Positions 17,902-56,100 of a stretch of 64,000 nt of DNA are shown piece by piece; position 1 is the stretch's first letter, and each line of letters starts with the position of its first letter. Below the pieces are notes generated by a model. It had not been told where the DNA came from. It saw only the letters and a program-made list of their open reading frames with translations, and made no database searches. The translations under genes and the position numbers were made by a program. Source of the DNA: Bispira polyomma. Its lineage: Eukaryota. Location of the stretch: contig OZ287752.1 in NCBI GenBank assembly GCA_965649765.1, forward strand, positions 53,258,001 through 53,322,000, in the 5' to 3' direction.

Positions 17902-20900
17902 TTAAATATTTTCTATAATAAACTCCATGACCTCTTTGGTCTCTACTAAAACAACTAAATCTCTCCAGAAATTCCACCTCCGGTTGTTGTAGTTTTGTAA
18001 AAACCGGGAGAGATTCTCCGATTTGGACTCCACACGGACAGAGATCTGAACATCGAAATAGACTAAATACATCAGGAGATGACATTTCAGGCGCTGTATG
18101 CTTTTGTAGAGAAGCTTTATCTCATCTTCCAAGGTATCATGGGTCACTTCACCATGCTGTTGTTCATCGACCAAGATCTTTTGGTGCCAGTAAAGTAAGT
18201 CAGATATGCACTGGGCTGAGATGTACAGTAGCTCACTCTGAAATCAGTATAGAAAGCAGCTATGTACAAGTAGAATACACACATATACAATATGCCCTCA
18301 GAACACAACTAAAATATATGACACAAACTGTAGCCGAGAAATCCATGTGTACCGCCTGATGTACTAATGAGGGTTAGACATATGCTGAACATTCGTCACA
18401 CAACATTTTCAGTCACATTTAAAACATTTAGTATTATAATAACCTCAATACTTAGTTTGGAATTCAAGGTTTTACCCAAATCTGTAGTTAACTTGCTCCA
18501 TAAACTCAATTTGACTTTTAAAGTTCTATGTCCTTCTGGCCCCTGGATCATGTTCGCCTGGCTCAAACTTTCTCCTCTTTCAGGAGTAAGCTGAAGGCCT
18601 ATCTTTTTGAATAGGCTTTTCCACCTTCGCAACCATTTACGGTAGTCTCCCTGGTTACGACTTCCATCCGCCCACTATTTTTGATTTTCGATTAACGTTT
18701 TGGGTTTGTTGCGCCTTAGAATTTGTTGTACAAAGATTAAGCGCTATAAAAGTACGACTAGATTAGATTAGATTAGACTTGACCCAATGCTGATAACATC
18801 CCAATCGCAATTGTGAATGGTGATCTTCCATTGGTAAGTACTGGATACTATATTTTTTTAGTTCCAATTCCAGGCCAGAATTTTTACACGGATTATTCAT
18901 AATTGGTCACTCCGAGATTTTCAAGTGTTTTTTAGTGCCAGGCTATTGGGTTTGTGGCTAATTTGTGGTTTTAATTGCAAGCAACCAACCAAAATCGATA
19001 ACTACAAAATACATGTACATTTTACACTTACAGTGTTTGCTGGGGTGAATTCCCCTCTCAACGGGTACAACTGAACGTGCCTAGGGCGGTCTTCCCTTAC
19101 CCTGTATCTCACCTAAAATATATAGAATTCCTGTTAGACTAATAATGGTATATAGCATTGCAAAAAACATTGCAAAGGATAAATTTGATAATTTCTATTT
19201 CTAAATTTCTTTAATACAAACTTACAACCACTTGCACCACTGGGTATCTTACACTAAAACAATTTTCTCAAGCATGCGATTAATACTAAAGTACTTAAAA
19301 CCATGTAAACTTGCGTAGTGTTGCTGTAGGTGGACCACATGAAGCTTAATGCGCTCTGCCTGATCCAAGATGTCCCTCAAGAACCCGTCAGTATTGAACT
19401 GATGGCTGGTACGCATTCGTCTAGAAGGTGCAATAGAATACATTGTAAAATGTGGGAAATATGCAGACAAGAGATCAGATTATAGATATCAAATTATCAT
19501 TTTATATATATAAAAATTAATATTATACAATATTATTCTAACCTCTGCAAATGGAAATTTCAGATAGCTTTTACTTGCTGGCAGAAATGAAATCGGTTAA
19601 ATAGTCCTACAACATAGTATCGGTTGTCATTAGTAAACAATGACATGTTCAGATCTTACCAAAGGATGTTATCTCTCAGTAACCATTATGGTGTTAGTTG
19701 GAGTCAAGCCGGTGACCTTATGATCACTAGACCTCTATAACAACTGGGACACAGAATTCCTTATTTATTATAATATCTTTTAATGAGTGTGTCTTTGTGT
19801 GAAAATTAAGTATTATGGGTGCCATTTGCCTGGGTTATGGATAACTATAACGGCACTCAGTTGAGTGCATACCTCTACCAAGGGACCACAGTGTCAAAAA
19901 GTGAAGAGTTCCTGGATATGCATTTATATTTAAAATGTAATGATCCCTTTATGACACATATCCTGGTCACAGACAAACGAACAGACAATGTAAAGACAAA
20001 TCTTTATTGACCGAGGTAATTACCTTACAAAGATATATATATGTAGTAAAATTATTAATGAACCCAGCTTTTGTTTTGAACTTCTTGCACAATCATTTAA
20101 AATTGTAAATTATTGCATTAGCTTGGTGATAAAGTAAAAGTCCACTGTCTCCCAGGAAGCTCTCAAAAACAACAACGTTGATGCTTGTTCCTATATGAAA
20201 AATTAGGATCCTCAATGTCCTGTTTTATTGCTACCTGGTCGGGTCCTTGCGTAAACTTAGACCTTCTATTTATTCCAGTGTAAAGATAGATGGGGTTGGA
20301 AAAAATTTTTACTCTGATAAGGCAATACCGCTGATTTAGTTAAAAATAGAATTATTGCCTCCTAAATAATATTCATATATTTGGATGTATTATGGTTGTT
20401 TTGGAAATTATTATCTACATTGAAGATAGACTTTGAAGGAATATTTAAACATTTTTTTGGAAGTACCACATTTTAAGGCTGTGAATGAAGGTTAATCAGG
20501 TACTCTGCTCCATAAAATGGGAATTACCTAGCAGGATCACAATCTGTTGGGATCATTAAAACAAATGTGTGAGTTTAGATTAACTATATTTTCCATCATT
20601 ATGCATATTATAAACCACTGTAAATACTGATAGGTCTGATGATCCTGCCTGTTTGAGCGGATCCCAGAAGGTTTGCAGTAAGACAGATGTTCTCGCAGTT
20701 GATTTACGAACGGATCCATCTTGATGGAGATGATGAGGCATAACACGTGGATCCAGAAGAATATAACAACCGGGACCCTAGCTGGAATCAGCAGAAATCA
20801 TATTTAAGTATAATAGTATAAGTATTAAGTATAGTAGAACCTACATCTATCGTGTGTCTAACAACTAAATTTTAATTTCACAATATATTCTGGCAGTGCA

Positions 20901-22347
20901 CCAAAATTCTGGATCTTCCTATAAGCTGTATTATCAGGGCATCCTTTTCTGAACATTCATTTTTAAGAACTAAACTTTGATCTCTTAGATTAATATTTTC
21001 GAATAAAAATGTCTAATATATATATATATATATATAAAGTCTATTTTCCGATATTAGGATAATTACAGGTGGCAATAAGAAATTCACTTTAATACCAGGT
21101 ACAGGTAGATGACCATTTAAACTAACAGTCCTTTGTTACTGGGTGTGGTAATCAAATAATGTATTTTGTTTAATCGTGTGGGCAATATTGCATATTTTTT
21201 CTAATCCTATCCAATCTATCCTTCTACCTAGAACATTCAACTTAATTTTAGCGAAATGAACTGATCCAACAACAACCTGTAAGTTTGCTTCGCTTTGCTG
21301 GTAATACCCAGAACAATTTCTAAAATGTTGATTGGAAGCAAGGGAGTCGTTGTCCTTTTTGCTTAATATAACAGCCATCCTATTCTTTCTCTGTTCTTGG
21401 GTAGCAATATACAATATAAAGTCATCATATTTGGTATGTTCATAATTACAGTCATGTAAGGTCTTTAAGCTCTGTTAAAATCTGAACCAGGCATGCATAC
21501 GCCAAATATGGCAGAAGACTTGCTAAAAATCTGTGGTTTAGAATACAGACATCTTGGCCCAATTACCCAGTACTAGTTTCATCCTGTTGTAAATGGCACC
21601 TCCTTATTTAATGTGAAGATATTGAAAGCAGAGTATAACCCTAACCTCCAACTAAACTAAAGCCAGTCTAAGGTGGTGGTTTACAGTACAACATCATATC
21701 TTGGATTTAATTCTGAGCACAGTACCTGTGTGTGTTGTAGAAGTCACTCAAAACACTAATTGTACAATTACAGTCAACCACTAACAGTTGTTCTCTAAAC
21801 TAATGACAAAGGCTTAATAATGTCCATCTGTCAACGTCGCAGAAGTTGTGTAGTCTACCACTGGGGATAGAACCCAATCACACGGGACTGCCATTTTAAG
21901 TGGTGATGTACGTTTATCTATAATTGGTAGCGACAAGCTGAGTTCGAACCCAGTTCTGATGTGTTCTTAGGCTCGTGGGTTTACCCAGTGGGCTGCAGTC
22001 TGTTTAAATTACTAAAGGTTTATATTACGTGAAATATTTTATAACTTGTTGCCAATATCTTATAAATCTTACTGGAAGCTATAAGTATAAAGTTTGAACA
22101 ATAGCATGAATCTTTTTTTCAAACTTATTTACGATAACAGTTGTGATAATAGAACACCTACCTTTGCATCCTGAAAAGATACATTTCTACAAACCAAACT
22201 ATCTGTATGTCCTTTCTAATTCATCTATATTACTTTTTATAGCATTTAAATTTTAATGTATTTTTTAACATTTATTAATTTAGTCATCTTGTTTGTCACA
22301 GTATGTTAATACGACCAGCAATACAAACTGGAGCAGTACTTACCCAT
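17902..22347 (-). CDS. Gene A: predicted secreted four-helix cytokine-like protein (~226 aa), 5 coding exons
   Basis: Exons on the minus strand: 22347-22344 (ATGG|gtaagt), 20781-20628 (signal-like RVPVVIFFWIHVLCLIISI; donor uncertain, alternative end 20649), 19420-19315 (GC donor, |gcaagt), 19112-19032, 18237-17902 (TAA). Phases 1,2,0,0 give an open frame. Homologous to gene B. Confidence 0.75.
18541..18778 (+). mobile_element. L2-type LINE 3' end within an intron of gene A
   Basis: 'PLDHVRLAQTFSSFRSKLKAYLF' is the ORF2 C-terminus, followed by gcgccttaga...gcgctataaaa and a (TAGAT)n tail. Confidence 0.7.
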
Positions 22348-22399
22348 TACCAACTTTGAAGAAACTTTTAGTAAAAACAAAATCAGGTCACCGTAGCAG

Positions 22400-22581
22400 A
22401 ATATATAGTGGCTTCTCGAGTCAAACTAAGTACCACCTTGCGAGAGAAAATTGCTAGTAACTTAGTAACCAGTCATTTTTAAAGAGTCTACCCACATTCG
22501 TAAGTGAGTAATATTATCATAAGTGGCTTTTCTTGGAAAATAAGGCTATGGTAACATATAATATTATCAAATGGGCGGGCG
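22400..22581 (-). promoter_or_regulatory. Candidate promoter of gene A (TATA-like box, STAT-type palindrome, GC box)
   Basis: TATATA ~55 nt upstream of the ATG (22402-22407), TTCTTGGAA (TTC-N3-GAA) at 22530-22538, and GGGCGGGCG at 22573-22581. Confidence 0.35.
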
Positions 22582-23039
22582 TTTGCTAGCAGGTTAACAA
22601 TTTATATGCATTCTAAAATACTCTTAATCCAAGTTTGCCAGTCAATAACAAAAAGGCTGAACCTCGCAGCTCACCTCTGATGTGACATTACTTTTATGTA
22701 TACGATCACTTTGCTAACACTGCTATTCGTAGACATCAACTCACTGACAAAACTCGTATACACATTTGAGGTCATTAACCACTGTTGTAAGTAACTTCTA
22801 TGATTCTTAGGATTTATTACACTTATTGCTCCAAAAGTTTGGTTTCAAAATTAGTGCTAAAAAGGTGGTAGCCACTAATAACAGAGTAACGTGTTTGGGT
22901 GTTCTTATTGATATTCAATCTTTTAGAGTAGAGATTCCCCGAACAGTTTGTCTCAGATACTGGAGTTTTTTAAAGTATAGGTAAAATAATGTTCGTAATG
23001 TGTAATGCTGCCCAAGATGGGAAACACATTAGGCTAGGA

Positions 23040-23245
23040 TGGCCATTCTTTCACAATTTGAACTGGTTTGTTTAATTCCTTGACAAACTCAATGGCTAGG
23101 CCTTCTTTGACCATAGTCTTGTTACAGATCATATGGAAATGGATGCTTGTTTATCAGGCCTGAAAGGAAAAAGCAATGATTTAATCTTTGTAAACATACT
23201 GGCCTTAGGCTATCTCAATTTCACAATTGTCCATCTAGAGATGTG
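23040..23245 (+). mobile_element. Relic of a DIRS-type RT/RNase H junction
   Basis: Translates as 'LNWFV*FLDKLNG*AFFDH...MEMDACLSGL...FTIVHLEM', matching 'LHLDACLTGL...LTIVHLEM' at 29056-29180. Confidence 0.75.
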
Positions 23246-25532
23246 AAACATACACATATGGCGAAAAGCCGATTGCTCTCAAGGTCAAACATGATTCTAT
23301 CATAGGGAACGAGGCACTGCTTGAGTTAGGACTTGGGTTAAGTTTACCGTAATGTTCGGACAAGGCATATAAAATTAAACCAACCTTAAACTAAGGTGTC
23401 TCACTGACACTATAACTGTAACCTTACCTTAAGTTAAACTAAGTGAAAGGGTGACACCTAAATTAACTTGACCTGAACTTCGCCTATGAGACTGTTGGAT
23501 ACATGAAAATCATAACATGAACACTTCTTTTGATAAGGAAAATCGGTCAGTGACTATATATTGTTTTAGACAGATATTTTAGTGAAAACACAACATTACA
23601 GGACACAGGTCTATAGTTAGACAGATATACAATGAATGCAAACACAATACTAAAATAACAGTCACTACAGGTCACACCCCCATTCACTTTAACCAGATGG
23701 GTATTTGATTTTGTCTGGCAGCTCTGCCTAATGCTAGGACACCCACCAGAAAGATTTTTCATTCAGACAAAGCACTTGTTTGTTCCAGCTGTTATGAGCT
23801 ATATATATATTAGTGTGTCTGGAGAATCTTTGTCACAAAGAAAGAGATTCTCGTGACATACCATTATGAAAAGAGACTCTGTCACCTACACAGGAAATTC
23901 AGAGGACAGTCTGATTACAGACATATAAAATATCTTTGTAAAAAGAAAGTTATGTTGGGGTTTGACACCTTCAAGTGAAGATTCAAATAATATGGTAACT
24001 TAAATAACTGACATCAGATTGTTTCTTTATTTTTAATATCTTTCTCATATCTCAGTCTAGGATACCTATTTACTTCTACCTTAAATTTTTTTCCAAAGAA
24101 GAAAACAGTGCATTCACAAGTTTTTTCCTTTAAAAAATTGAAGATCTGGTAAGTCAGGTATAGAAAGAAATGAGATTTTAAGTTTAGTTTTTAAATATTT
24201 CAAATATTGTATAAATACAGTAATAGAGGAGTACTATGGTTATTAGATGTATACATTTTAGACTAGTCCATTCTTAGTTTTAAATCATTTAACGTATATA
24301 ATTACTATGGTGTTATTTTAAAGTCCTTCTATATGTACAGCGCACTTTGGCTGAGTGCTGTATATTGAAGTGCAAATATTACTCTGCACAATTTTATTGG
24401 ACCCTAAAAGTCTGGGCAATAGCTTCTATCTGGGAAGGTTGGCAGCAGACTTGGCTTGAAGGCCAGTTCCTTGCTGTTCAGAAACCTTGACCAGCTACCA
24501 TGTTCTGCTTTCTTTTGCCAATAAACTACCCTCAGCGATGTATGATGCACTTAGGCAATGTATTAAAAGGCCACTTTAAACCTAAAATAAAAAAAAAATA
24601 AAAATTTCAATAGTTTACCTAACTTCCCATAACCTACCCACATTGTATGGCTCTATCTTCAGCAACATTTTTTTTATCTAATCAACTACTCTAGTTTGTA
24701 TATGATGATATTTGGTCGATTAGAAGCCGTCAATGCATTTTATTCCGAGACATACAATGTGAACTCCTTCCGATGAACATCATGTTGTATCTAACAAACT
24801 ATTTTTTATCAAAACAAATACTCTAGCCCTTATACAATAGTCAATTGACTAGCAGCTGCCAATGTTTCACACTCTTAGATGTTTATTATCAAGCAGTTGA
24901 CACCCCCATACTTACCGGCAATACTATCTTTTTGTAATAGATTAGTACTGGTATAGTTTCAGTTGAAAATTGATATGAGGTCATTATGACTTGTATTTGT
25001 TTTGTGTCAATGTTAGCGAACTGGAGCTATCTATAATCTGTTACTGAGAATGTTCTTCGTTATAGAAAAATTATCATTCTCCAATTATCTCTCTTCTATT
25101 GAGGAAAGAGAGGAAAAAGACTTCTAAAACAACTAAGACGGCTATATCTACAATTTTCTCAATCATTGACCATATGTTGTAGAAGAGTCTCCCAGTTAAG
25201 CTTAGATCAGCAGAAACTGCATAGCAAGTCCACCCCAGGGGACTGCTAGATCAGTCCAACCTCCTCTTTTATCACTCTACTTTAATCCCTAGCGAATGCA
25301 ATGGCATTATCCAACTTTCTGTCCATCTGGGCCTTGTCCAATCACAGCATTAGCTATTAGTGACCCCTAAGCTAGGATAGCTATCCTCCATATTGAATTT
25401 GTGTTTTCACCTGTGAACAGGACATTTAGAAAAACTGAAATTTTAACCACGTATTTACACTGAATTGGTTTTATTTATATTTTATTCTTTTATTAACTGA
25501 TGTGGTACGGGAACTAGTGATTGTTGTGTGAA

Positions 25533-26741
25533 ATGGGGAAAACAAAAACAACTCCCGTGTTAAGCAGCAAGAAACGGACCAACAAGGACAACTTCAACTA
25601 GCACAGCCAAAAAAAGGGGTACTGGTCAGGTAACTACTACAAATAATCACGATCAATCAGAAATACATAGAACAGTCATTGCCGACACCGCGTGTCCTAG
25701 TATTGATTCTCAGTTATTGACCAGTTCAAATGGATCATCTAGCCAAGCCGGGCTGTCATCTCAGGCCGTACCCCAGTCACAAGTCGAGTCACAAAGCATG
25801 TCCGAGGTTCTTTCAATCCTGCGTGGTCTGGAGACCTCCAACGCTAACATAACTCGTAGAGGACAATCAGACAGTTACACCTGCTAATTCTCCATTACAC
25901 ACCATGAGGGATGGTACGGTGGTCCAACAGAGACACAAGGGCTATTCGTTACCTCTTCCCCCTCCCAGGTACAACGGGGTCGCGCAGCCTCTGGCTCAAC
26001 CTATGATGCAACCACCAACAGGTCAGGGTTACAACACAGATGGCATTGTCCCCAGTCTCGATGCGTTAAGATCTTTTCCAAACGTGCAGGCGGCCGTTAC
26101 CAGGCAGCTGGCTGACTACGAAGCCTTAGCCCAGAGGGGTCTAGTCCAGGGAAATCACTCAATCAGGCAGAAGTCTGGTCGTTATAACTCCACAGATATT
26201 ACTTTAGCTGATCCCAAACTCAGATGGTCTAACGAAGGTTGGGGTGGGGGATCGACCCGTCGAAGGCCAGTCTTTGACGACCTCACGTTGCCGCAGTGGG
26301 CGGCTGGCCAGCTGGCCAACTCGCTACAAGTAAGTGATCCGGTAACAATGAAAGCTATGGTGAACCAAGTGGTACACGCATTACGGGATGCAGCCACACT
26401 TCCGTGGCCTGCTGTCAGGACAGCCTGGGCTGTCAGTATGCATGACATTGAGGAAGGCAGGCTGTCCTGGCAGGACAACACTGAATCGCATCAGTGCCTC
26501 CCAGATGACTATGGTAGGCAACAATGGCAGTAACTTGGCTAACGGGGCTTCTTCAGAAAGTAAATCCATCTGTAAGCTGTTTAATAATGGCAAGTGTACT
26601 CACAAGGCGGATCATGGCAATTATCGTCATGTATGTTGGTATTGTAATAAGACATTAGGAAAGGACGCGTCGCACCCAGAATTCAAATGCTTTAAAGCGA
26701 ATGTAAGTAAGCAGCCAGACAGACAACAAGGTAACATCTAG
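25533..26741 (+). pseudogene. gag-like ORF of the DIRS-order element (frameshifted)
   Basis: ATG at 25533. Pieces include ORFs 25904-26533 and 26388-26741: 'KSGR', 'FDDLTLPQWAAG', 'WPAVRTAWA...IEEGRLSWQD' and a C-terminal Cys/His finger 'CKLFNNGKC...HVCWYC...HPEFKC'. Confidence 0.8.
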
Positions 26742-27703
26742 GGCCACGATTCACAACCAGTTGGACGAACATTAGGTAGTGATAAGGGTAATTCAGTGAT
26801 GAATGGTAACAGTATATTTGTAAAAGAGTTTAATATAAAGTACGAAAACAGTGAATTAGGTTGTTGGGACAGATGCATGTCTGCAATTAACACAAATGGG
26901 CAAAGTTCCAATAGTAATGATTGTCAGCATATGGTAATGTCAGATAGTACAAGTTTTGTCAATAATGTATTCAACACTGATGTTAATGTGAACTTTGTTG
27001 ATAATGATGTCTTTAATAATATTGCAGTTTCAGTGGATGCTGGCGACAATTACCAGTATGAAACCAACAATGTAAATGAATGTATTCAATTTCAGAGCAG
27101 GACCCAGTCGGGTCACCATAGATGGGACAGTAGCACTGAGGGCTGCGTTTCAAATGGGAGCAATCACTATGCTAATTTACCAGTTTGTAACAAAGAGACA
27201 CACACGTGTCAGGTATCAGTCACCAATTGGAAAACTTTTTGTGGGGAAATTCAAAACTTGGCCCCAATTGTTTACATTAGGGATAGGGATGCAAAATTCT
27301 CAGGTTATTTCCACATGTTTTATGATGTGACTGCTGCCAGGTGTATATATGCTCGTGTTGAATTTCCACCTAGCCAAAACCTTTGTATTATTCAAACCTT
27401 TCAAACCATAATCCAGGTTCAAGCTGTTTCTTTAAATACTACCAGTTATACTAATGTGGAAACTCATCACCAGGCTGTAGCCAAGCAAGCTGCTGATACA
27501 TTTTATTATTTCGAAAGAGATAATGCCTGTTTGAAGCAGTTGGGGTTTTGATTATACTGAATACATGACCAGGTTAGTAGATGCACTTATTAGTGACAGC
27601 GAAGATGAAACACTTGACAATTGCCATGAGTCAGACAATTGTGCAGACTTGCTAAATCTAAGTACACAAAAACCAAGTAAGGCTGATTTGTGTTCAAATA
27701 TAC
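26742..27703 (+). pseudogene. Unassigned coding region between gag and RT, probably a long N-terminal extension of pol
   Basis: Open from 26742 to 27551 in the gag frame. An overlapping open stretch (WGFDYTEYMTRLVDALISDSEDE...) bridges to the RT ORF. No recognisable domain. Confidence 0.55.
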
Positions 27704-29519
27704 ATGAACTCGTCGAGCAACGAATTCACCCAAATGGTTGATAGTGTTCGAGCAAACAAGGATTTGTACAAAGAAATTAAGGACTTTAATGACCTCGAGA
27801 AAACCATGGGTTTCTTAGCACTTTCCTCAACAGCATTCACATTCACAGGTCTTGACAAACTTTTTAGAAAAATTGAAACAGTAGAAGACATGCTGCAAGT
27901 GGCTTCTGTTATCAGAGACACTGCACTTCCCAATTATAAACAAGCAAGGGTTCCCCTGGTGTCAGGACTTAATCCAGATGCATGGGATGAAGTTTTCCAA
28001 GATTATCCTGACCAGTTGCTGTGTCAGTATATTAGATTCGGTTTTCCTCTTTCTCTCACCAATCCAAAAATGCTTAACATTGCTTCTGTCACCAATCATT
28101 ATTCTGCCCTCCAACACACAAGTAGTGTAAGAGAATATCTGGTTAAAGAAAGTAATAAGGGTGCCATGTTGGGCCCAGTGAAGGAGGTTAGCTCCTCACA
28201 TTATCATTGTTCACCACTTCTCAAACGTCCCAAGGACATTACTAGTCGTAGGGTAATTCTTAACCTCTCATACCCACAAGGCAATTCGCTTAATGAGAAT
28301 GTTGATAAGAATTTATTTGACGGAAAAAAATTTATTTTGAAATTTCCTACAATCGATGATATTACTAGTGCAATCAAAGTCACAGATGATCCAGTATTGT
28401 TTAAAATCGACGTAGCTCGCGCTTTCCGTAACTTGCGTATAGATCCTGTCGACGCTGTAAAATTAGGAATCCAGTTTGAAAAGGGTAGTTACATAGATCC
28501 TGCAGTAGTGTTTGGCTGGATTCATGGCAGCGCTGCGTTCCAACGCTGCTCTGATGCAATAGCGTCATATATGCGCAAAAACGGTTTCAATATGTTCTGT
28601 TACATCGACGATTACATTTGCGTCTCGAATAGAGCAGAGGCTCATAGGGGTTTTCAGATTTTGACCAAACTGCTAGACTATTTAGGTCTCCCCATGAATG
28701 CCAACAAACGCACCCCACCTAGTACTAGTATTACTTGTTTGGGCATTAACATTGATACTGCCGCTGGTACTATTAGCATTCAGCATGAAAAAATAGAAGA
28801 GATTCTTGAATGTGTGTGTGACGTGTTTAACAGGCGCTTTATAACGCGCAGTCGTTTCCAGTCCCTCTTAGGGAAACTTCTGTATGTGCACAAGTGCGTC
28901 AAGCCGGCACGCACTTTTATTAATAGATTGCTTCACACGTTTAGAAACAACGAGGATAAGAAGAAATTTGCTATTTCTCAAGACATGCATGGTTCAAGCG
29001 GTTCTTACAGACATTTAACGGAGTAACTTACATTGACCCTCCTATTATTCAAAACATGAGTGAGTTACATTTAGACGCTTGCCTTACCGGTTTAGGAGGC
29101 GTGTGGAAAGATGAGGTGTATGCTACACCATATTTCAATGTTTTTGGCAGAGAGTTGACAATAGTTCACTTAGAGATGCTGAATATAATTCTCGCGTTGC
29201 GTGTATGGGCGTTAAAGTGGGCGCATCAACGGATTTTGTTTCACTGTGACAACATGGCCGTAGTACTGGTTGTGAATTCACAAAAACTAAGGATGACTTT
29301 CTGGCATCATGTTTGAGGAATATCTGGCTGCTAGCAACCACACATGACATCACAATTGACATACAACACATTCCAGGGAAAAATAATGTGATTGCAGATG
29401 CTCTATCTAGACTATTTTCAGATAAACCTCCTACTGCAGTGCTAACTATTGAATTACAAAATTGTTATAAATGGAATGAGGTCCCTATAAAGTACTTTGA
29501 CCAGGCTTTATCTGTGTAA
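27704..29519 (+). pseudogene. Reverse transcriptase - RNase H of the DIRS-order element
   Basis: RT motifs 'RRVILNLSYP', 'LFKIDVARAFRNL', 'FGWIHGSAAFQR', 'CYIDDY', 'CLGINID'. RNase H motifs 'DACLTG', 'HLEM', 'CDN', 'HIPGKNNVIADALSR'. Frameshifts near 28985 and 29280. Confidence 0.93.
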
Positions 29520-29527
29520 TTTCAGGT

Positions 29528-30499
29528 TCTGCCAGTTCCACTCACACACTTGTTCAATCAGCCTGCAACAGAATAGACTTGGCACTGCGACCAAAGACCA
29601 CTTCGGCTTACAGTAACCAATTTAAGACATTTTTAGCTTTCTTACATGTTGCAGGCATTAAACACATTAATGTTTCATCAGTTCTGGCCTTCTTAGAATA
29701 CTTAGCACAGAATAGCCTTTCACCGGCTGTCATTGCCAATTACCTCTCATCACTTAAATTTATGGCTAACAAATTACAGTGGAGTATAACTCCTTTTACA
29801 CACAACTCTGTTTCTTTATTTACGAGAAGCATTACCATCAACTCTACTTTCAGGCCTAGACCTAAGGGATTGTTTGATATACATCAGTTAACACAGATAT
29901 CTCAAGCTTGTCAGATATTGCAAGATCCAGTACTTTTTAGGGCTATTTTCCTTCTAGCCTTTTTCGGCTTCTTGAGACTTTCCAATCTGGCTTCTCATTC
30001 TAGGGCAGCGTTTGACCCATCTAGGCACTTTCTTAGACAGGATATTATCTTTGCCCCACCTGGGGCCCATGTCATCTTGAAATGGGCTAAGAACCTTCAA
30101 AACAGATCAGACTCCCACATTATACAAATTCCTGTACTTCAAAACCAAATTTTATGTCCAGTAAGGGCTATACAGCAGCTTATCTTGTCTAGGCCTCTCT
30201 CTCCATCTGCACCACTTTTGGCAGTTAACTCACCACCATTTTACCCAGTCATAGAGACTCATGTGAGAGTCGCATTACAGAGAGTTTTAGAACACATAGG
30301 TATTCCATACCATTCACACGGGTTCCATACATTCAGCAGGTCGGGGGCCACATTTGCCTTCAATAGAAATGTATCACTGCAGATTATTATGTCCCATGGC
30401 CTTTGAAGGTCTTCAGCTGTATGGACCTACCTACAGAAGACCTCCCAAGCTGCTTCAGTGGTGCCTCTCACCTTTGCTGTGGCTATCCCCCCTTCTTAG
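29528..30499 (+). pseudogene. Tyrosine recombinase of the DIRS-order element
   Basis: 'FFGFLRLSN' (catalytic R), 'KWAKNLQ', 'LCPV', 'GFHTFSRSGA', 'HGL*RSSAVWTY'. The conserved Trp is mutated to TGA at 30404-30406, and the original stop is TAG at 30497-30499. No ATG start; the ORF is preceded by a splice-acceptor-like tttcag. Confidence 0.92.
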
Positions 30500-32517
30500 T
30501 TGGGCTTGGGGCTTAAAATTCCATCCTGAAATTTTAACTGACCTTGGTTGTCAACCTGTACATAAGCTAACATGTAAATAATAACCTCAAATGGAATCTT
30601 TTACTGTCTTATAATAAATTTACCTATTAACTTATAACTTATCACACCACCATTGGACTGACTTGTGGGTTTAGCAAAAAGATCCAGTATAATGTCAAAA
30701 CCAATGTGACAGTCCTGTTGAATAGACATACAAGCTGCAGGTTTCGACCCATGCACAACTTTGATTTTTTTACAGCCTGAAAAGTCAGATTGAGAGACAA
30801 TGCTTTATGCATAGGGTGTTAATCTTTGTTGGACATATATTCGTCAGTAGGCTTTTCGGTCACATTATTGCAAACTCATAGTGTTGTCGACGGTTTGCAA
30901 GGCTTTTAGGTCAAGCAATGTTATCAATCATTGTCGCAGATCTTCATGGATCTTTGTTGATCCAACAATCGTTTTGATCTTGGCCAGATTTTCCTGTATA
31001 CAAGTGATCCCTTTTTACTACCCTGAAGGTCTTCAGACGTCCTTAATTAATCTTTGACGTCTTCTTTAGGTCTTCTTTAGGTTGTGCCTCCACTACCAAA
31101 CCAAGGTGTTTGCTAGTCTAGCATAAAGTTGTCCTGGCAGAGTGGCAGATTCTCAGGAGACCAATTCAGTCTTAAAGGTGGGGAAATATACTAAGATCCT
31201 CTACATTATTATTTATTTTAACTTTTTTACAACATTGGTGCATTGTACCATGGCAGAGATACATGCATGATAACGGATCGCCGAGAACTAATTTACCCTA
31301 GATGTATGTGGTAAGACCTGTGGTGAAGTAGTTGCATGTAGTCATTGGTGGTCTTTATAGGATCACAACTAGTTCCTGATTGGTTGCAGTAGAGGAGCAG
31401 TAAATAAAAGTCCTTTATCCAATCACTTTATTGGTCAGCGACATATCGTGCAAGTGCTCTAGGGTTGTTTGCAGATTGGATTAAAGATCAGTCGGTGTCC
31501 TATTGTGAAAGCTGCCGCCCGACACCATGCATTTTGGGTCCATTACACTGATTGGTAACAAATGTTATATGGCTTCCTGATGACAAATATTTAACCTATG
31601 GGATCACACGACTGATAAAACCATTGTACATTTTTTCACCACTTCAAACCATGTTGCTGAGTTGCTGAGGCTTTCTGAAAAGGCTTAAGTAGAAAGTCGT
31701 AGAAAGGAATTACTTGCAAACACAAATTTCTAGGATGAAAACAAACAACAAAGAAAACCTGTTTAATGAGTTATTAGGGATTGATAAATATTTCTAGCAA
31801 GCTATTTTGATTTTATGCCCCAGGTTCTCATGAAGTGGCCATATCTGATGTGTGACTGGGGCTTAAAGAGAGAAGTGTATCATTTTCTAGATTTTTCTCG
31901 GGGATACATGAAAATCATAGTCATTAGAAGTAAGTTTTGAAGAACATACTACGCCTAATTAATACCTTTTAATTAGTAATGGTGATTACCATTTGATCAT
32001 CGACCTCTCGACTTCCCTAACTCATGGTTAAAATACATTATGTTAAAGTCATTTCCTGTATTATGAGTATCATTAATAAACAAATCCTCCTTTATTTCAG
32101 CATGTTTTATTTTTATTTGTCATGTCACAGCAAATTAAACTTTCAATTAACACTTTTTTTTAATTAAAATTTTCTGGAAAGTGTATGATCAACTAAATTG
32201 ACAAATGGTAATCATATTCCAGAGTAGTGGTAATTAATATGCTGTAAGAATCACATTCAATTTTCCCAATGTCTTCTGATTGTGTTAGGTGTTTATCTTT
32301 TTCTCCTTCGCATATTAATCCTATTTTGTGTTTTATTTAAAGTTCTAATAAATGTTTTATAATCTCGACGGGGGAGGACTGGAGGGGGTGGAAACCCGGT
32401 ACTAAGAAATATCAGAAGAAAGAAAAATATCTCCTGTTTTACTTAGAGTCCTCCCGGAAATCAACACCCTGTCATGAAACACCATTGCCTGTCTATAAAA
32501 CTTAACACAGTCAGACA

Positions 32518-32657
32518 NNNNNNNNNNNNNNNNNNNNNNNNNNNNNNNNNNNNNNNNNNNNNNNNNNNNNNNNNNNNNNNNNNNNNNNNNNNNNNNNNNN
32601 NNNNNNNNNNNNNNNNNNNNNNNNNNNNNNNNNNNNNNNNNNNNNNNNNNNNNNNNN
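32518..32657. other. Assembly gap (140 N)
   Basis: Run of n characters. Confidence 1.
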
Positions 32658-33818
32658 AATTAGATTCATTATATTTGAATTATTTGCATGGAGCATTAAC
32701 ACACCTAGTCGGGGATTGAGTATATCTTGACTAATCACTGCATCAGGAATTGCAAGGAGTAAATACTGTAGAATCTGTGTAACTTTTTACTTTCGACGAT
32801 GATGTACTTCAGCTCTATGTGCAAAAAATATATAGACTCTTTAACTAGAGATGTAATTGTCATGCTGACAAGAAGTTCAGTTGTAGGTGATAAAAGACGC
32901 CTCGTAGGTTGGTATGCTCAGTAGTTTGTATTGCTGTATCAAAAGCTTTTGTTTTCTATATTCGAAGATGCCGAAACAGCAAAGCCTTTAGATGAAATCA
33001 GACCATACTGTGCTGCAGCCCTACAATCCCCTGATGAATATCTGTACAAACTAGGAAGTTCATCACCCTCGACATTTGTGTTTGTTATCTCAGGACTAGT
33101 CCAAACTAACTTTGACAGCTGCCAAAATGTTGCTTGCTCATACGGGATGTGGGGGTAATAACTGTGGTTGCATGGGGAAAAGGCGTGTTTGTGGTTTGAC
33201 GGTTAACATTCTCTCCTGCAAACGTGGGTTCAGATCTTAGCCCCAATATGCTTATGAGAAAGCGGGGAGTATACATCATTGAAGATCCGTGGTTTTCTGA
33301 CCAACCTGTATTGGTTTCCTCCATCGGTGAACTAGCCATTACAATAGTGTTGAAAGTGATGTGAAACTAGCATGAGAGAACATACCATTAAAAGTAGAGT
33401 TGGCCAAGCCTGTAAGAGATTTTTTTCAATACAACATATTAATTTTGTTGCTGTTAGGTTGTTTGTTTGTTGTTGTTGATTTATTTGGGGGGGGGGGAAT
33501 ACTCATTTCTACATTTCCCTGCATGAGACTTTAGTTCATGTTGTTGATTCACTTTTTATGAAAAGTGAGTTAGTTCGTTTTGTCTCAGAAATGAGACAAT
33601 TTCTTTTGTTTGAGACCCGATCCCAGTGGATATATTGGCTGTACTATATTGGAGTTTATATTTACATATGTAAGGATTTTTATATCGTGCATTAGTCTTG
33701 TTAATTTTAGACACTGGAATATTTAGACTATGCTTTGTCTTTATACAGAACTGATTAATATTTATACATATTTCTATGACTCCATCAGTATATATATATA
33801 TATCATATATATTTTCAG

Positions 33819-36800
33819 GAAGTTTGCAGATAGCTCTCTTAATTACTCATGCAGTGTGTGTCACTATAGCAGAACAGCCTGATGGAACAGCAGAAGTAAG
33901 TTGTGACAACTATCACAATCCGGCTCTTATTGACATGTTACGTCAACCTGAAGCCAATCCTGAAGTCACAGTCAGCTATCTTCATAATATCCGTTCTCTG
34001 GCTTTTCGAATAAAGGCGATAGCCTTGGATTTAAAGATTATTTATGTGAGTATCACAGAAAGTGCAGACAAAATCAAATAGCATCTATGTAAATCTATAT
34101 TACAATTTTCTCTGTTTCTCTCAGTGACTGATCTGCTGATTTGGTATTTTATTTGGTGGCAGTGAAAAACCTAGGTCTCTATCCAATTTAACTGCAAAGC
34201 TTTAAACGTGCTGGTTTGTACAGACTGTCAGTCCAGTTCTTCTGCAGAGGTTAAGTACTACAAAGTCCGATTTGTTTAGAAAAAATCAGAAGGCACGTAA
34301 CTGAACCATAACAAAGATGTATTTGAAACTTTTCTGCATAATATCTGTCCTTAAACCAAGAAAAGATTAACGATTATTATGCATTATATTTTCAAAAATG
34401 CATCTTGCAGATGGCTACAATCAGTGCTATTATAGAATAACTACTACTTATTTAATTTTCAGTTTATTTGATTTTGCTATGCACATTAAAATTCCCTGAG
34501 GGGAACATTTATGTAAGGTAATTCAAATTATATTTTAAGTTAAAATTAGTGGCAGTTAAGTCAAATCCAAACTGTAAGGGCACTCAGAATAGCACATATC
34601 TCCGCCAAGGTGCCACATTGAGAAGAAGTGAAAAAATCCATTGTTCCACTCTGCTGCCTGGATCTGGTCCACAATGCCACTAATTATATGTTTAAGTCTC
34701 CATCAAATTTCGTGTAAATTAGTTCAATAGTACTTATATGTAATACTGGTGATTAGCATATCAACTAATGTACGCAAAGACACAAGCTCCTTATCTGATG
34801 TAATTAGCTTCTAAAATACAATATAAACTTCTTGTAAATTGATACTAGGCAATTATTGTTAATCTATTTATGCGAACATGGTATAATATCTTGTTGTAAC
34901 CTTATATAGTAACTGATGTGAATAATTTATTCTGTATAGGCCTCAAGAAAAAGAGACATTCAATCTAACCCTCTTGATCTTGTCCCTTCCTTTGAGAGTT
35001 GGCCAGAACTGCAGGTAAGCTGAATAAACTACAAATGTTCTTATAATTGTAACAACTGAGCTGATATGCATGCATGAGTGAAGCCCCGACTTTATATTTG
35101 CAAAGTCCTAGCACGTGATATGTAACAACACAGATTGTTCCAAAGCCTGGTGACATGGCATCTGACAAAGCTAAACATTACCTGCTTTAGGGTGTAACAG
35201 TCAAAATTAATACCATCTAAAAGTTTTTTAAAAATGTGGCTAACGACATAATTGTTCTTCTTATGCCAGCAAAAATAGTAGTTCAAATCGTTGTTAGCGA
35301 CAGATATGTTCAACATCCTATTGTATAAAACCTGTCATCTAGCTGATGGCAACACTGGCTTTTTACGCAAGCAAAAGTAATTATTTGTGACATATAATTT
35401 TTGTCAAGTTAGACAGGAATATTGGCAGTTTATCTTTGGTTAAGAAAATGTATAGCATTCCTAGGTATGTAACAATTGATACATTGTGGTTAAGAGGATC
35501 ATTTGAAATTCATCCTTCATCATCGATCATCCTTCTGCAGTTGCAGGCTAAACAGCAGATTTTAGTTACTGGTGGTGACTGGATGTACTTCTGCAGACCC
35601 TAAAAAGTTAATATTGTATAAAAAAGTTCTTGTAACTATACATGTTCCTTTATAAAGGTTAATTGCTGGAACAAAGATGTCTGAAATACCAAACAGGTAT
35701 ATTAAACATTATACATTTAATAAAGACTCTACCAGACTGTTTACTCTCCCATGTACAGAATTCATAATTGTCACACACAAGTGATAAAAATAACTTTTAC
35801 CAAACAACACATATATCCAGAACAGCCGGTGACATCAGAGACTCAGAGATTTGATTGTCATAGTTAGGGTTGGGGATTGGAAGGTAATAATTAATTTGTG
35901 TAAATAAATAGGTTTTGATTAACAAGTATGACTTTCCAAACATTATAAAACTGACACTGTAGTAAGACTATACCAATGAGAAGTGAATGATCTTTGCAGG
36001 CATAAACTCTAATAACTATCACCGTCATTGCTATAACTATCAGCCAACTATCAAGTTGGTGTGTATTTACTTCTGTCCAGTCAAAAGCTGATGTTACAAA
36101 TCAAATTGTTTTATAGTCCTGGAAGTGTGGAAGTACTGGAACCTAAACTAAAACTCTCTTTACTCTTCTTTTTCTTGGTTAATTACTTGAATGATTGTGA
36201 TTGACAGTATAAATCACTTGTGATTCATCAATATATCAGATCTCCTACCCCAAGTCAGTAAAAAAGAGCAACAGCATTTCATATTATATTAGTAATTTTG
36301 CATCCTATAACAAATAAAATTGATAAAATATACGTAGGAAGGTTCTCAACCTTATCTTGATTGAATCACTAAGATATGATACAATTATAAGTCCAGCAAC
36401 AGACCTAAGTTGTCAATAAACAGTTAATTAAAACACACATTGAGGCCAACTGGCATAACCTTTCTATGTTGTAATAACAATACATAACATTAGTTCATGG
36501 AGGCCTAGCCTCTCACCATTACAATAATATAATAAGTTTACTACACTAATGACCATTTTTGGCCATTGTGTCACCAATACATTATACGAGATCATTAGGA
36601 CCCCATCACAAAAGCGTTTCCATACAATTTAAACATGCTTGTCAGTGGAGTCTTCAGAGAGAGTTCCATGACTTTGACCCAAATACACTAAAACTGCGGT
36701 TGGCAAATGTCCTTGCTTTGTAACATAAATAGATAGTTTCTGTTTCTTGGATCGAAATAGCCGCAGAATAGCCGCAGTCTCTTTTCCTTGAATTAGATTC

Positions 36801-38725
36801 TGTATTTATCTCGGTGCTTTCTGATGAATACATTTATGGACTATTGTCAAAATTTTAAACAATATTCTATAGCAAATTGGAAGTCAGTGGAGTGTCTTTT
36901 GGTGTTTGTAAACTACTGCTGTACTTGTTTAAGTTTAGCACAAGCTTTTCTGGCTCATTTTAAAATTTTTGCATCTGACTTATCCCTTTCTCAGGCAACG
37001 CCATGAAAATACCATTGCAATAGTCCAGATGGGATAGAACAAGGCCATGCTTATAATAAAAAAATATGGTACTTCTGTAAAAAAGTAAACAAAACTGCTA
37101 AATTGTATCTCAATTAACTAAAAACTACCTAACAGAGAGAAAGAGCTTGCCAATATGTATCAATTTATTATAGTTTTATCCAACTTTTGCTTACACCAGA
37201 CAGTTTATGAGCCTAAGCTAAAAGCAAACTAACTCCAAGGGCACTCAGTGGAGTGTACACTCAACACACTGCAAGTTGACAGAGTACCAAATATGTAACA
37301 AAAATATCCAGAATCCACACCATGATCCAGATTCACATTAAAATGTAATGTGTACTTCCTTGGTGCATTCCCTACACCTACATTAATATTGTGTAATCCG
37401 GTGACAATCAAATAAGCAAAGTTACAAAATGTAGCTACCATATGTATTTTGAATTGGATCAGAGCTTAAGTGATAGTTATTGGGTTGGTGGAATATAATT
37501 TCTTACATCGAGATGTGCCAGTTTTAATATCCAGAAAATAAATCCCAAATTGATTGCGCTGAGTGCTTCTGACCTGCACATCTTTTCCTACATGTATAAT
37601 CAAATGAATTTAAATTGGTGTAAATCACTCATTCAAATTGGTGCGAATATTATTTTATTATAATAAACACCTACTGCAACATCCGTGAATTTTGTAGGAT
37701 TCATCGGTACCAAAATGCTGTTGCAGTTGCAAATGCCCTAGTGTTAAGTCGACTTGACTACTGCAACTCACTACTATATAGAATTGGACAGGGAAAAAAT
37801 ACAAGCTGCAAAAAATTCAAAACAACCTATGCATAATTGTTTGCCATGCTGGTCCCAGCTACATACAACACCTCTGCCTAAAAAATTGCACTGGCTGCCT
37901 ATTGAGTTCTATATTAAAATGAAGGTAATTGTCCTCATTGTTAAGACTGTCCATGTACAGCATTAACCTGCCAACTTTCAATCTATGCTGACTCTCAGCT
38001 ATTTTATTAGAGAAAATTGTCTCTCCACTACTGGCTTCTTACCCAAAAAGCTGGCTTGTTCAAAATCAAGTTGCCTGTTGAGTGAAATGGTCTCCCTACT
38101 AGTCTTCTCACTGAGACAAGGATCACAGGTTTCAGGAAAAGCTCAAAACACATCTGTTACAACTTGCTTTTCCAAGTTAACATTCGTTTAACATTCGTCA
38201 GCTGGTCATGACCGAACTGTGATCATCAATCTTTTCTCCTATCTGACTATTCTTTTGCATATTGATTATATGTACCGCAGAGGATGCCTGGTCAACGATT
38301 GTGGCACTATAAAAGTAAAAACATTTACATTTTCTGAGAAACCTAAAATGCCTTTCTTCACTTATTGTCTACTTCAGGATCAAACAACTAGTCGAATTTC
38401 AACTGCTGTTTCTGCTCTGTCTTTGCTGCACCAAGCCATGCTACACCAGGAAAGCCGTGAGGGAAAAATTTTAGCAGAAACCCTAGAAACTCAATTGGAG
38501 CAGCTGACCCAATCCATTATGGCCCTGGATTGCCTGCTCCAGCCTCTGGCTCTTTTACCCAGTGGCCTGGATCCAGTCGAACAAGCCTTGCTATTGGATA
38601 CCCATGCATTGGTGAATATGTTCGTTAGAAACCGTCGTGACAGACACAAGTTACAGAGCTATGTGTTGTTAGAGACAGAGGAACTCATGGGTTTTATCAT
38701 AGACAACATTCCAGTATACTCTTGA
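33819..38725 (+). CDS. Gene B: predicted secreted four-helix cytokine-like protein (>=216 aa), paralog of gene A; first coding exon not located
   Basis: Exons 33819-34045 (ttttcag|, phase 1; hydrophobic SLQIALLITHAVCVTIA; |gtgagt), 34940-35014 (tatag| ... |gtaagc) and 38378-38725 (cttcag| ... TGA). All splice sites are canonical and the frame is open. The last exon aligns without gaps to the last exon of gene A. Confidence 0.8.
37720..38175 (+). mobile_element. L2/CR1-type LINE ORF2 C-terminal fragment in the last intron of gene B
   Basis: 'ANALVLSRLDYCNSLLY', 'KLQKIQ' and 'HTTPLPKKLHWLPIEFYIKMKV'. Confidence 0.8.
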
Positions 38726-53100: not shown

Positions 53101-56100
53101 TGTATTGTGGGCTTTGTTATTGCATCTGCAAATAATTCAAAATTGCTCTCTAGACTTGTTCAAGGCCATCCTACAGATACACTGGCCCATATTTTAGTAT
53201 GCTATACCAACACTCGTTCTTAATTTCTGCAGTCGACTTTCTATTCTTTACAGTATACTTAATTTGCTAAATGCCGGAAGTTAGCAGTACCGAAAACCTT
53301 GACCTCATTGCTCCACCAACAAACTGTCCACCTTGACATATAATATGCAGTTGCTCAAAGTGATTATCTGAAAATAATTCGAAATATGTTCAAGGCCCAC
53401 CTATCTAAATAAAATGTTAATACAAGTTATGTTAAACCCCCAAATAAAATAAATACTTGGCCTTAAAAGGTGACACTACTTCCCATGTCCACAAATATGA
53501 TTTTAGGAAACAGTAATCCGACAAATATTTCTCTGAAAGTTGTTTTTTCTTTAAATGCTCTTACTGTATGGAGTTCATTGCCACGTCATTTCTTGGGGGA
53601 GCATTGGTAGTGTAGAGGTAATCCTCTTGCCAACTGTCTCTATAGTTGAACGAGAATCTCTTGGCCCCTGCAAGCATGGGGGAAGGTTCGCAGTAGAGTA
53701 GAGTTGATGTGGGCTGGTGGTTTCAGTTCTATTGAGTGAAAATGGAAGGTCAGTATTGAAGGTCAGATGGCAGTTTTTGGTGGTTATATGTTGAAGACAG
53801 TAAAACCATAGTTTGAGGAATTTATTTAAATCTGTACATGTTAGTTCAGTATGTCTACAGGTAGGGGTAAAATATCATCATAGTTTAAAATACAGAGTAA
53901 TTTTAAAACACCCGTACATAGTACAACATTACAAGCAAAACGCCAGTACAGCAGCAATACAAGAGGATATAAACCTCGAAACAGTACAGCAAGTTGAAAT
54001 TCAACGTCTTAGAGCTAGCATTCGCCTAAATAACATATGCTAGTAATTATTAACGGCCCCCTAAGCCAATACATAACAATTACACATTAATCTTTTATCA
54101 TTGACAAAATCATTATGATTCTACAAATATAAGTACATGAATCTGCGCTAAAGGCCTAGGTGAAGTTTTGGGAACCTGGAACTTGCGGCACTGACTCGCC
54201 TAGCAGTGAGACATCCAACCTCACAGAGCCCACACCAGAGGGTAGGTTATGAGGAAGGATCTAACACCACACAGTTCCGAGTTAAAAACTCCCACAATCC
54301 AAACGAATCAAGTGATTTTCCTAACAATCTCAGCAGGGCCCAGTGGGTCCATAATCAAGTAACCATCTAAACTCGGTATGTGCTTGCATGCCATATTTCT
54401 GCCATAAGCTAGCAGTATAAATATGTGCTAAGAACCATAAATTGGCCATAAGCGAAGAAAAGAAAATTTTTAGAAAAACCCTTAATAATATCTTGTGCTG
54501 TGGTAAGGGGAGGTGGGGGGAAAATGTCCGTGTTAATGCTGCTGAATCTGATTCCAAAATGGAAGATCTTTACAGAAAACGTGGCCACTTTTAAGAGGGA
54601 AAGCTTCTGATTGGCTAGAGTATGTTATTCACGGTTGAATGAGTAACTTGTAGTGATAGAATTAATCCCTAGGGGTTAAGGTAGTCATATAAATTTTCTG
54701 TGGTAGAACTGAAGTAGCAGACCCCTGTTGGGTCATGCTATGCAACAGTGCAGAAATATTATCCTTACGGTTTTACTACAGATGGAGGCATTTCAAAATA
54801 TTGCTTTTGTTTTTTAGAAAGCCCCAGTATTGCTACATCGTCAATGACCATAAAGGAGAGGTATTAGATGTCCAGGGAGAAAAGAGTGCTCCGGGCACTA
54901 AGGTAGGTCAATGGGTATAACCATGGATACTGTATCGTTTTTAACCAAATACTTGTAGTGTAGCTATTTATACAAATGAGTTTGGAGTGTGAAATTCCTG
55001 TGTAAAATTATTGATTACCTCTGCTAAAGAAGTAATGTGTTTTCTTGGTTTCATTGGTTGGTTTGTTTGTCACCGGGAGTAACTAATAAACTACTTAAGC
55101 AAAGGACATACAGTAGAGTGCATACCTCGCCTAAGTGCCAATGTGCCAAAAAGTGAGAAACTGTCTTTCTAACCAAAAAGCTCTACTCTGCTATGACATT
55201 AAATGAATTTTCCCTTGGCCCATATACAATACTCCACCATATCTATTGCAATAGACAAAGACAAGCATAATGTTCTTGGTGGATGTAGAAATATATGACC
55301 AACAAGTCTTTCTAGACAGGTTATTGCTTAAAACAGGTGACCATTTGTACAGAGTTTGATTTGATTCTATGTCATCTATTTTATTTAACGGGTTCCCCCA
55401 TGGAGCGCAAATAAAACAAACTGTTGATGCAGGCGATTGAAATTGTATTTGAGACTTACATGTACAATTTTATTATTTATATTTTATCATGCAAAATTGG
55501 ATTATACATTGGATTTATATCAGTACTGATCAGTACATTAGATTTGAAGTCCAGTTACAACCTTAATTAATTTACGTCATTATTAATTCATTCATTTTCT
55601 TTTGTAAAGTTTGAATCGAGTTCAGAGCCTAAAAATGTTGACATCTTGGTCTCCAAACATGTATTTTAAAAAATTTTCAATATATTGTAACGGCCAGATT
55701 CAATGGTGGAAAAAAAACAGATGGTGGAAGAAACCAGTGCTAAGACATTGTAAACCACTGGCCTACAGCAAGTACCTGACATAGTTTCTCACATTGCTGG
55801 TATGAATGGGAATCAGACCCACATTGGTGGGATGCCAATGATTGTAAAGCAGGCGCTAACCAGTAAGCAACCACGCCCCATACCTCCAAAAAAGGAAGAA
55901 TCCCACGATATAGCCGTCATCATGAAGGCAATCATGTCTTATATCTTGCCCAAAGATGTCATCACTAGTGACCATTGTGCTTTTCACTTGGGTTGGAAAT
56001 AGGGACATTTCGATCAGCGACCATACTCCCTAACCACTAGACCATAGAATATCATATCTAATGCAATCTTGATCTGTGGGAGTATACTCGAAAAATCTCT

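Follow-up and report, generated by a model that had tools for sequence, protein, structure and literature searches.

Head-to-head genes for two candidate four-helix cytokines in the annelid Bispira polyomma

The window analyzed here is a stretch of 64,000 nucleotides (nt) from the annelid Bispira polyomma (assembly GCA_965649765.1, contig OZ287752.1, positions 53,258,001 to 53,322,000 of the forward strand), and positions given below without a contig prefix are positions within it. Two predicted genes, A on the minus strand and B on the plus strand, point away from each other between positions 17902 and 38725. The original prediction described them as divergent, spliced, secreted-type paralogs of about 220 amino acids (aa) encoding candidate four-helix cytokines of the Unpaired/IL-6 type, that is, ligands of the JAK-STAT pathway. 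The peptides quoted in it were all recovered at their positions, and its description of the gene pair is backed by orthologs that have evolved under purifying selection. That the proteins are cytokines is likely. Both proteins have a single strong hydrophobic segment, at the N terminus, and no other transmembrane segment.

A profile search (HMMER) seeded with the two last exons, among 1.8 billion representative proteins, matched three proteins. P0002 and P0001, both found in a single assembly from a second species, are the orthologs of genes A and B, respectively. P0003, which came from a third sample, consists of a single last exon beginning at the same phase-0 position; it is 21 to 27% identical to A, B, and the two orthologs (27% to the last exon of gene A) and is linked to A/B by an E value of 1.8e-7 and by 13 invariant columns in the alignment. 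Word-index protein searches returned no match or the same relatives only, and searches of the same 1.04-Gb B. polyomma genome found no third paralog. Exons 2 to 5 of gene A are all present in order in the second species, with matching boundaries (108/209 aa identical; nonsynonymous difference [pN], 0.30; synonymous difference [pS], 0.83), and exons 2 to 4 of gene B are identical to their ortholog at 130 of 215 positions (pN, 0.23; pS, 0.72). Synonymous sites are thus near saturation while 52 to 60% of the protein sequence is retained, which indicates purifying selection. On this evidence of sequence conservation, genes A and B are real.

Gene A is predicted to encode 219 aa in five coding exons (22347-22344, 20781-20649, 19420-19315, 19112-19032, and 18237-17902) separated by introns of phase 1, 2, 0, and 0. 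Coding exon 1 (22347-22344) comprises 4 nt, the ATG plus one base, followed by a phase-1 GT donor. Together with the proximal promoter (22338-22469, minus strand), it forms a 135-nt block that matches the ortholog at 66% identity (E, 4e-5) and ends at an identical ATG-G/GTAAG junction in both species; a TATA-like box lies near 22402-22407, within the ∼130 nt conserved upstream of the 4-nt exon. Used as a control in the comparison with the ortholog region, the exon 1 region scored 90.5 (background mean, 34). STAT-type TTCnnnGAA sites upstream of the gene (22530 and 22935) were discounted, since there are 17 such sites in the window and their positions are not conserved. Exon 2 (20649-20781, 133 nt) has a phase-1 acceptor and encodes the hydrophobic putative signal peptide and the N-terminal cysteine C37; its donor is a phase-2 GC, and the ortholog likewise has a 133-nt exon that keeps the AG/GCA donor (15/37 aa identical), and on this ground a GT alternative at 20628 was rejected. 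Exon 3 (19315-19420; 19/35 aa identical to the ortholog) carries putative helix A, is amphipathic in that region when taken at 100 degrees (P = 0.04, against P = 0.002 for the ortholog), and ends in a phase-0 GC donor. Exon 4 (19032-19112) encodes 27 aa of a putative AB loop, is bounded by phase-0 introns on both sides, and has an 81-nt ortholog with the same boundaries. Exon 5 (17902-18237; 65/110 aa identical, pS 0.87) encodes 111 aa and the stop codon, comprising putative helices B and C, a CD loop with a short helix, and helix D; it carries C160 and also C118, a third mature cysteine conserved in the ortholog. Intron 1 measures 1.6 kb in the window versus ∼10.7 kb in the ortholog, where it holds a long interspersed nuclear element with endonuclease, reverse transcriptase, and zf-RVT matches (L015:11997-18568). 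The last intron contains a short repeat of very high copy number (18546-18777) that also has matches in the second species' loci.

Gene B is predicted to encode about 225 aa from four exons (31527-31554, 33819-34045, 34940-35014, and 38378-38725, plus strand) joined across GT-AG introns of phase 1, 0, and 0. The exon at 31527-31554 (9 codons plus one base, with a phase-1 GT donor) has a Kozak-like context and CCAAT motifs upstream; the ortholog region showed nothing conserved that corresponds to it (score, 36; background, 34), and none of the other candidate first exons on either side of the assembly gap matched that region. The start exon at 31527 is a plausible candidate only and unconfirmed. 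The gap itself, a run of N at 32518-32657 to the right of this exon, lies inside modeled intron 1, and because no modeled exon overlaps it, the reading frame is not at issue. Exon 2 (33819-34045) runs from a phase-1 acceptor to a phase-0 GT donor and encodes the signal peptide core, the N-terminal cysteine C38, and putative helix A, with 44 of 75 residues identical to the ortholog and equal boundaries. Exon 3 (34940-35014) encodes the 25 aa of a putative AB loop, 20 of them identical to the ortholog, including a basic RKR motif (34946-34954). This motif is conserved, and cleavage there would give two chains joined by the conserved cysteine pair. Exon 4 (38378-38725; 66/115 identical, pS 0.72) encodes 115 aa and the stop codon, with putative helices B, C, and D and C162. 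The next intron of the second species holds about nine tandem repeats of the loop exon's 3′ half with its splice donor (L040:8400-9270, minus strand, and L012:1-602), a pattern that resembles a donor amplification in the neighboring lectin gene (window 47590-48050).

The head-to-head layout recurs in the second species, where an 845-kb contig carries gene B exons 2 and 3 on the opposite strand, ∼10.5 kb upstream of the gene A start codon. Since this order and orientation are found on one contig, they are conserved and were not made by a scaffold join, and an assembly artifact as the source of the layout is ruled out. The arrangement in the second species is evidence for how the genes are ordered across the N gap in the window, not for the continuity of its letters.

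A very improbable alternative is that no intact pair is made, gene B being a prohormone cleaved at RKR and gene A decaying in this species through its new GC donor. The conserved RKR motif would suit it, as would the exon 3 donor of gene A, where the ortholog's GT is replaced by GC in a weak exonic context; if this donor failed to splice, read-through would reach a stop after 21 further codons. The GC letter is also found in contigs of two samples and is therefore not a sequencing slip. No RNA run matched the locus; three runs compared with it consist of DNA-like contigs and bear on this donor only. However, the new donor agrees with the consensus at intronic positions +3 to +6, gene A already has GC at its exon 2 donor, which is conserved, its downstream exons are intact, and both proteins are conserved over their whole length rather than as short peptides.

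Genes A and B are also related to each other. The joined models gave a local alignment score of 117, compared to a mean of 32 and a maximum of 57 in 2,000 shuffles, and the last exons are 34% identical over 106 aa (BLASTP, E 5e-11). The gapless alignment of putative helix A (8/23 identical) and the loop exon lengths of 27 versus 25 aa were confirmed. The last exons had been said to align without gaps over 111 aa; this holds at both ends (16/54 and 14/27 identical) but not in the middle (1/30), where the best alignment uses small gaps within 30 columns, so that 31 of 111 positions agree overall in the gapless version. The intron after helix A is indeed phase 0 in both genes, with the correction that the donor in gene A is GC, not GT. 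A phase-1 intron followed by phase-0 introns, which had been taken as frequent in cytokine genes, describes gene B but not gene A, in which an additional phase-2 intron with the conserved GC donor precedes helix A. Both proteins have the N-terminal cysteine and the later cysteine, to which C118 must be added in gene A, and the R..RD motif proposed before the last helix is present in gene A and P0003 but not in gene B.

As to what the proteins are, the first match of P0003 by ESM Atlas features was a cardiotrophin-2-like protein (0.91, with 209 of 256 features shared). Ten of 10 atlas matches have a family or clan in common; among the matches listed, those with a Pfam family fall into IL-11, IL-6/G-CSF, CNTF, LIF/OSM, CT-1, IL-27a, and leptin clusters, all class I cytokines. 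The predicted lengths of 219 and about 225 aa and the hydrophobic N termini agree with the first two search criteria used for lamprey IL-6, 150 to 280 aa and a signal peptide (10.64898/2026.04.02.716188). Folding with AlphaFold2 covered the last exons only, and helix A was placed by amphipathy and conservation. For gene A, the model (predicted local distance difference test [pLDDT] score of 55, low confidence) has helices at residues 2-28, 33-60, 74-81, and 86-110, a layout of helix B, a 4-residue turn, helix C, a loop, a short helix, and helix D; in gene B, the CD loop and helix D were merged. IL-6 also has a short helix in its CD loop (PMC7378365). The conserved cysteines are 123 residues apart in A, 124 in B and its ortholog, and 125 in the A ortholog, no cysteine occurs in the loop exons or helix D, and the disulfides of oncostatin M (OSM) include Cys6-Cys127, a spacing of 121 (PMC8355150). 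Each protein is therefore best read as a long-chain four-helix cytokine with a putative up-up-down-down fold, given the language-model matches of the relative, the architecture, the cysteine spacing, and the pathway exons described below. We consider it probable that each is a long-chain class I cytokine with an OSM-like disulfide that engages a gp130/Domeless-like receptor and activates JAK-STAT signaling.

Several results weigh against this assignment. The gene B exon had no usable ESM Atlas match, full-library Pfam searches of the exons and alignment members and PDB sequence searches were blank, the last-exon models reached a low-confidence pLDDT of only 55 to 58, and fold searches with them were generic and topped by unrelated bundles. 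The exons and alignment members did not match the IL6, IL11, CNTF, LIF_OSM, PRF, Hormone_1, or Leptin profiles, a test of low power, and the Hormone_1 and CNTF models had no match at the locus itself. These blanks, the unrelated bundles, and the small number of relatives, only three among the 1.8 billion representatives, would all fit an annelid-restricted family of secreted helical proteins unrelated to class I cytokines, for example, coelomic, mucus, or gamete surface proteins with convergent amphipathic helices. Such an origin seems unlikely to us, since the Pfam-named atlas neighbors of P0003 are all class I cytokines, since helix order, the CD mini-helix, the OSM-like cysteine spacing, and size agree independently, and since cytokines evade BLAST even between lampreys and jawed fish, as happened with lamprey IL-6 (10.64898/2026.04.02.716188). 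A helical cytokine of another class with a different receptor, such as a class II interferon/IL-10-like protein or a prolactin/leptin-like hormone, is quite improbable. The absence of a Hormone_1 match at the locus speaks against it, and four long helices are more in keeping with class I, as class II has five or six. Prolactin and growth hormone have a C-terminal disulfide loop and leptin has a bond from the CD loop to the C terminus, and the cysteine pattern of A and B includes neither.

Under the class I cytokine reading, A and B would have arisen long ago by tandem duplication of one gene for a secreted, long-chain (four-helix, gp130-type) cytokine and would have stayed head to head. After removal of the signal peptide, each protein would consist of helix A, the AB loop, helix B, a short turn, helix C, a long CD loop with a mini-helix, and helix D, and, as in OSM, a disulfide would join the N-terminal cysteine to the one at the end of helix C. 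The protein would bind a gp130/Domeless-like receptor and thereby activate JAK and STAT as part of an immune, wound, or growth response. B shows divergence in the CD loop and where helix D begins and may therefore differ in receptor affinity. Exons for the pathway are present in the genome: STAT exons, a JAK-type FERM_F1 exon (E, 1e-6), and receptor exons with an Ig-like domain followed by IL6Ra-bind (E, 6e-5), the best PDB match of which is gp130 (E, 5e-5). The receptor exons occur twice (C4:39914000-39924400 and C4:40129000-40139000), 215 kb apart and 99.8% identical over ∼10 kb, which fits a region duplicated either very recently or only in the assembly.

Between the two genes, and part of neither, lies a 5.4-kb Ngaro-type (DIRS group) tyrosine-recombinase retrotransposon (25218-30660, plus strand) with Pfam matches to reverse transcriptase and integrase-SAM domains. 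The element is one of many young copies: at least 17 others are near full, at 93 to 96% identity and with split direct repeats. It had no match in the ortholog region at the thresholds used. Other copies have a second terminal-repeat pair beyond the point corresponding to 30660; the copy in the window lacks this tail, which fits truncation or recombination between B repeats. The end of a second tyrosine-recombinase element, recognized by translation, lies at the left edge (1-733). Downstream of gene B, in both species, adjoins a gene with ricin-B/EW29-like galactose lectin exons (44047-54917), syntenic in the second species at about 81 to 83% DNA identity; its best PDB match is a 29-kDa galactose-binding lectin (E, 6e-7), the earthworm lectin EW29. 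A tandem satellite with a ∼29-nt period and a strong C-rich skew occupies 49721-52965. Elsewhere, the genome contains erythrocruorin linker genes (PF16915; E, 3.5e-11), which, like the EW29 match, mark the animal as an annelid.

In a 2026 survey, IL-6 family ligands were confined to vertebrates and Upd to insects, although molluscs have receptor, JAK, and STAT (PMC13203501), and a review of annelid and bivalve mediators reports earthworm JAK-STAT transcripts with no known ligand and lists no annelid ligand (PMC9756803). Structure-guided searches recently revealed such cytokines in lampreys (10.64898/2026.04.02.716188), and a mosquito Upd-like ligand was recently validated (10.1101/2025.09.21.677592). 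Genes A and B are candidates for the missing JAK-STAT ligand of worms and molluscs. More tentatively, they could be the first described spiralian gp130/Domeless-JAK-STAT ligands with an OSM/LIF-type disulfide. On that view, a LIF/OSM/cardiotrophin-like long-chain cytokine would already have been present in the last common ancestor of protostomes and deuterostomes, and insect Unpaired would be a derived branch of its family. Some unnamed lophotrochozoan proteins may already carry automatic fold annotations as four-helix cytokine cores. A, B, and their orthologs provide concrete candidates to pair with the gp130-like receptor from the same genome and seed profiles with which further members could be sought in other spiralians.

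Among known systems, Unpaired (Upd1 to Upd3 and mosquito Upd-like) shares with A and B a secreted-type protein that evolves fast, a protostome setting, clustered paralogs, and a role (for A and B, a candidate one) as ligand of a Domeless/gp130-like receptor. Fly Upds are much longer, however, at about 400 aa, and the Unpaired label given to A and B found no support, with no Pfam match, including to the Unpaired model, and no Upd cluster among the atlas matches listed. The genes share with IL-6 genes an intron inside the signal peptide, whereas gene B has four coding exons and gene A, although it has five like IL-6, has a phase-2 second intron. The two disulfides of IL-6 lie around the AB loop and helix B; A and B lack this cysteine configuration and, unlike IL-6 and IL-11, have no intron within the B-to-D region. 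Also absent is the second bond of OSM, Cys49-Cys167, which links the AB loop to helix D. Given the failed IL-6 (cysteine and intron) and Unpaired (profile) tests and the missing OSM bond, A and B are not assigned to any of these families. They further differ from LIF, OSM, and cardiotrophin in having no sequence or Pfam match, in an extra AB loop exon, and in being predicted annelid proteins rather than vertebrate ones. The likenesses to this group are a secreted-type helical protein of ∼200 aa, an N-terminal cysteine and one at the end of helix C about 121 to 125 residues apart, the cardiotrophin-2-like top atlas match of the relative P0003, and the putative placement of helices B to D within one last exon, as in the LIF, OSM, and cardiotrophin genes. 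The evidence points to the LIF/OSM/cardiotrophin branch rather than to IL-6 itself.
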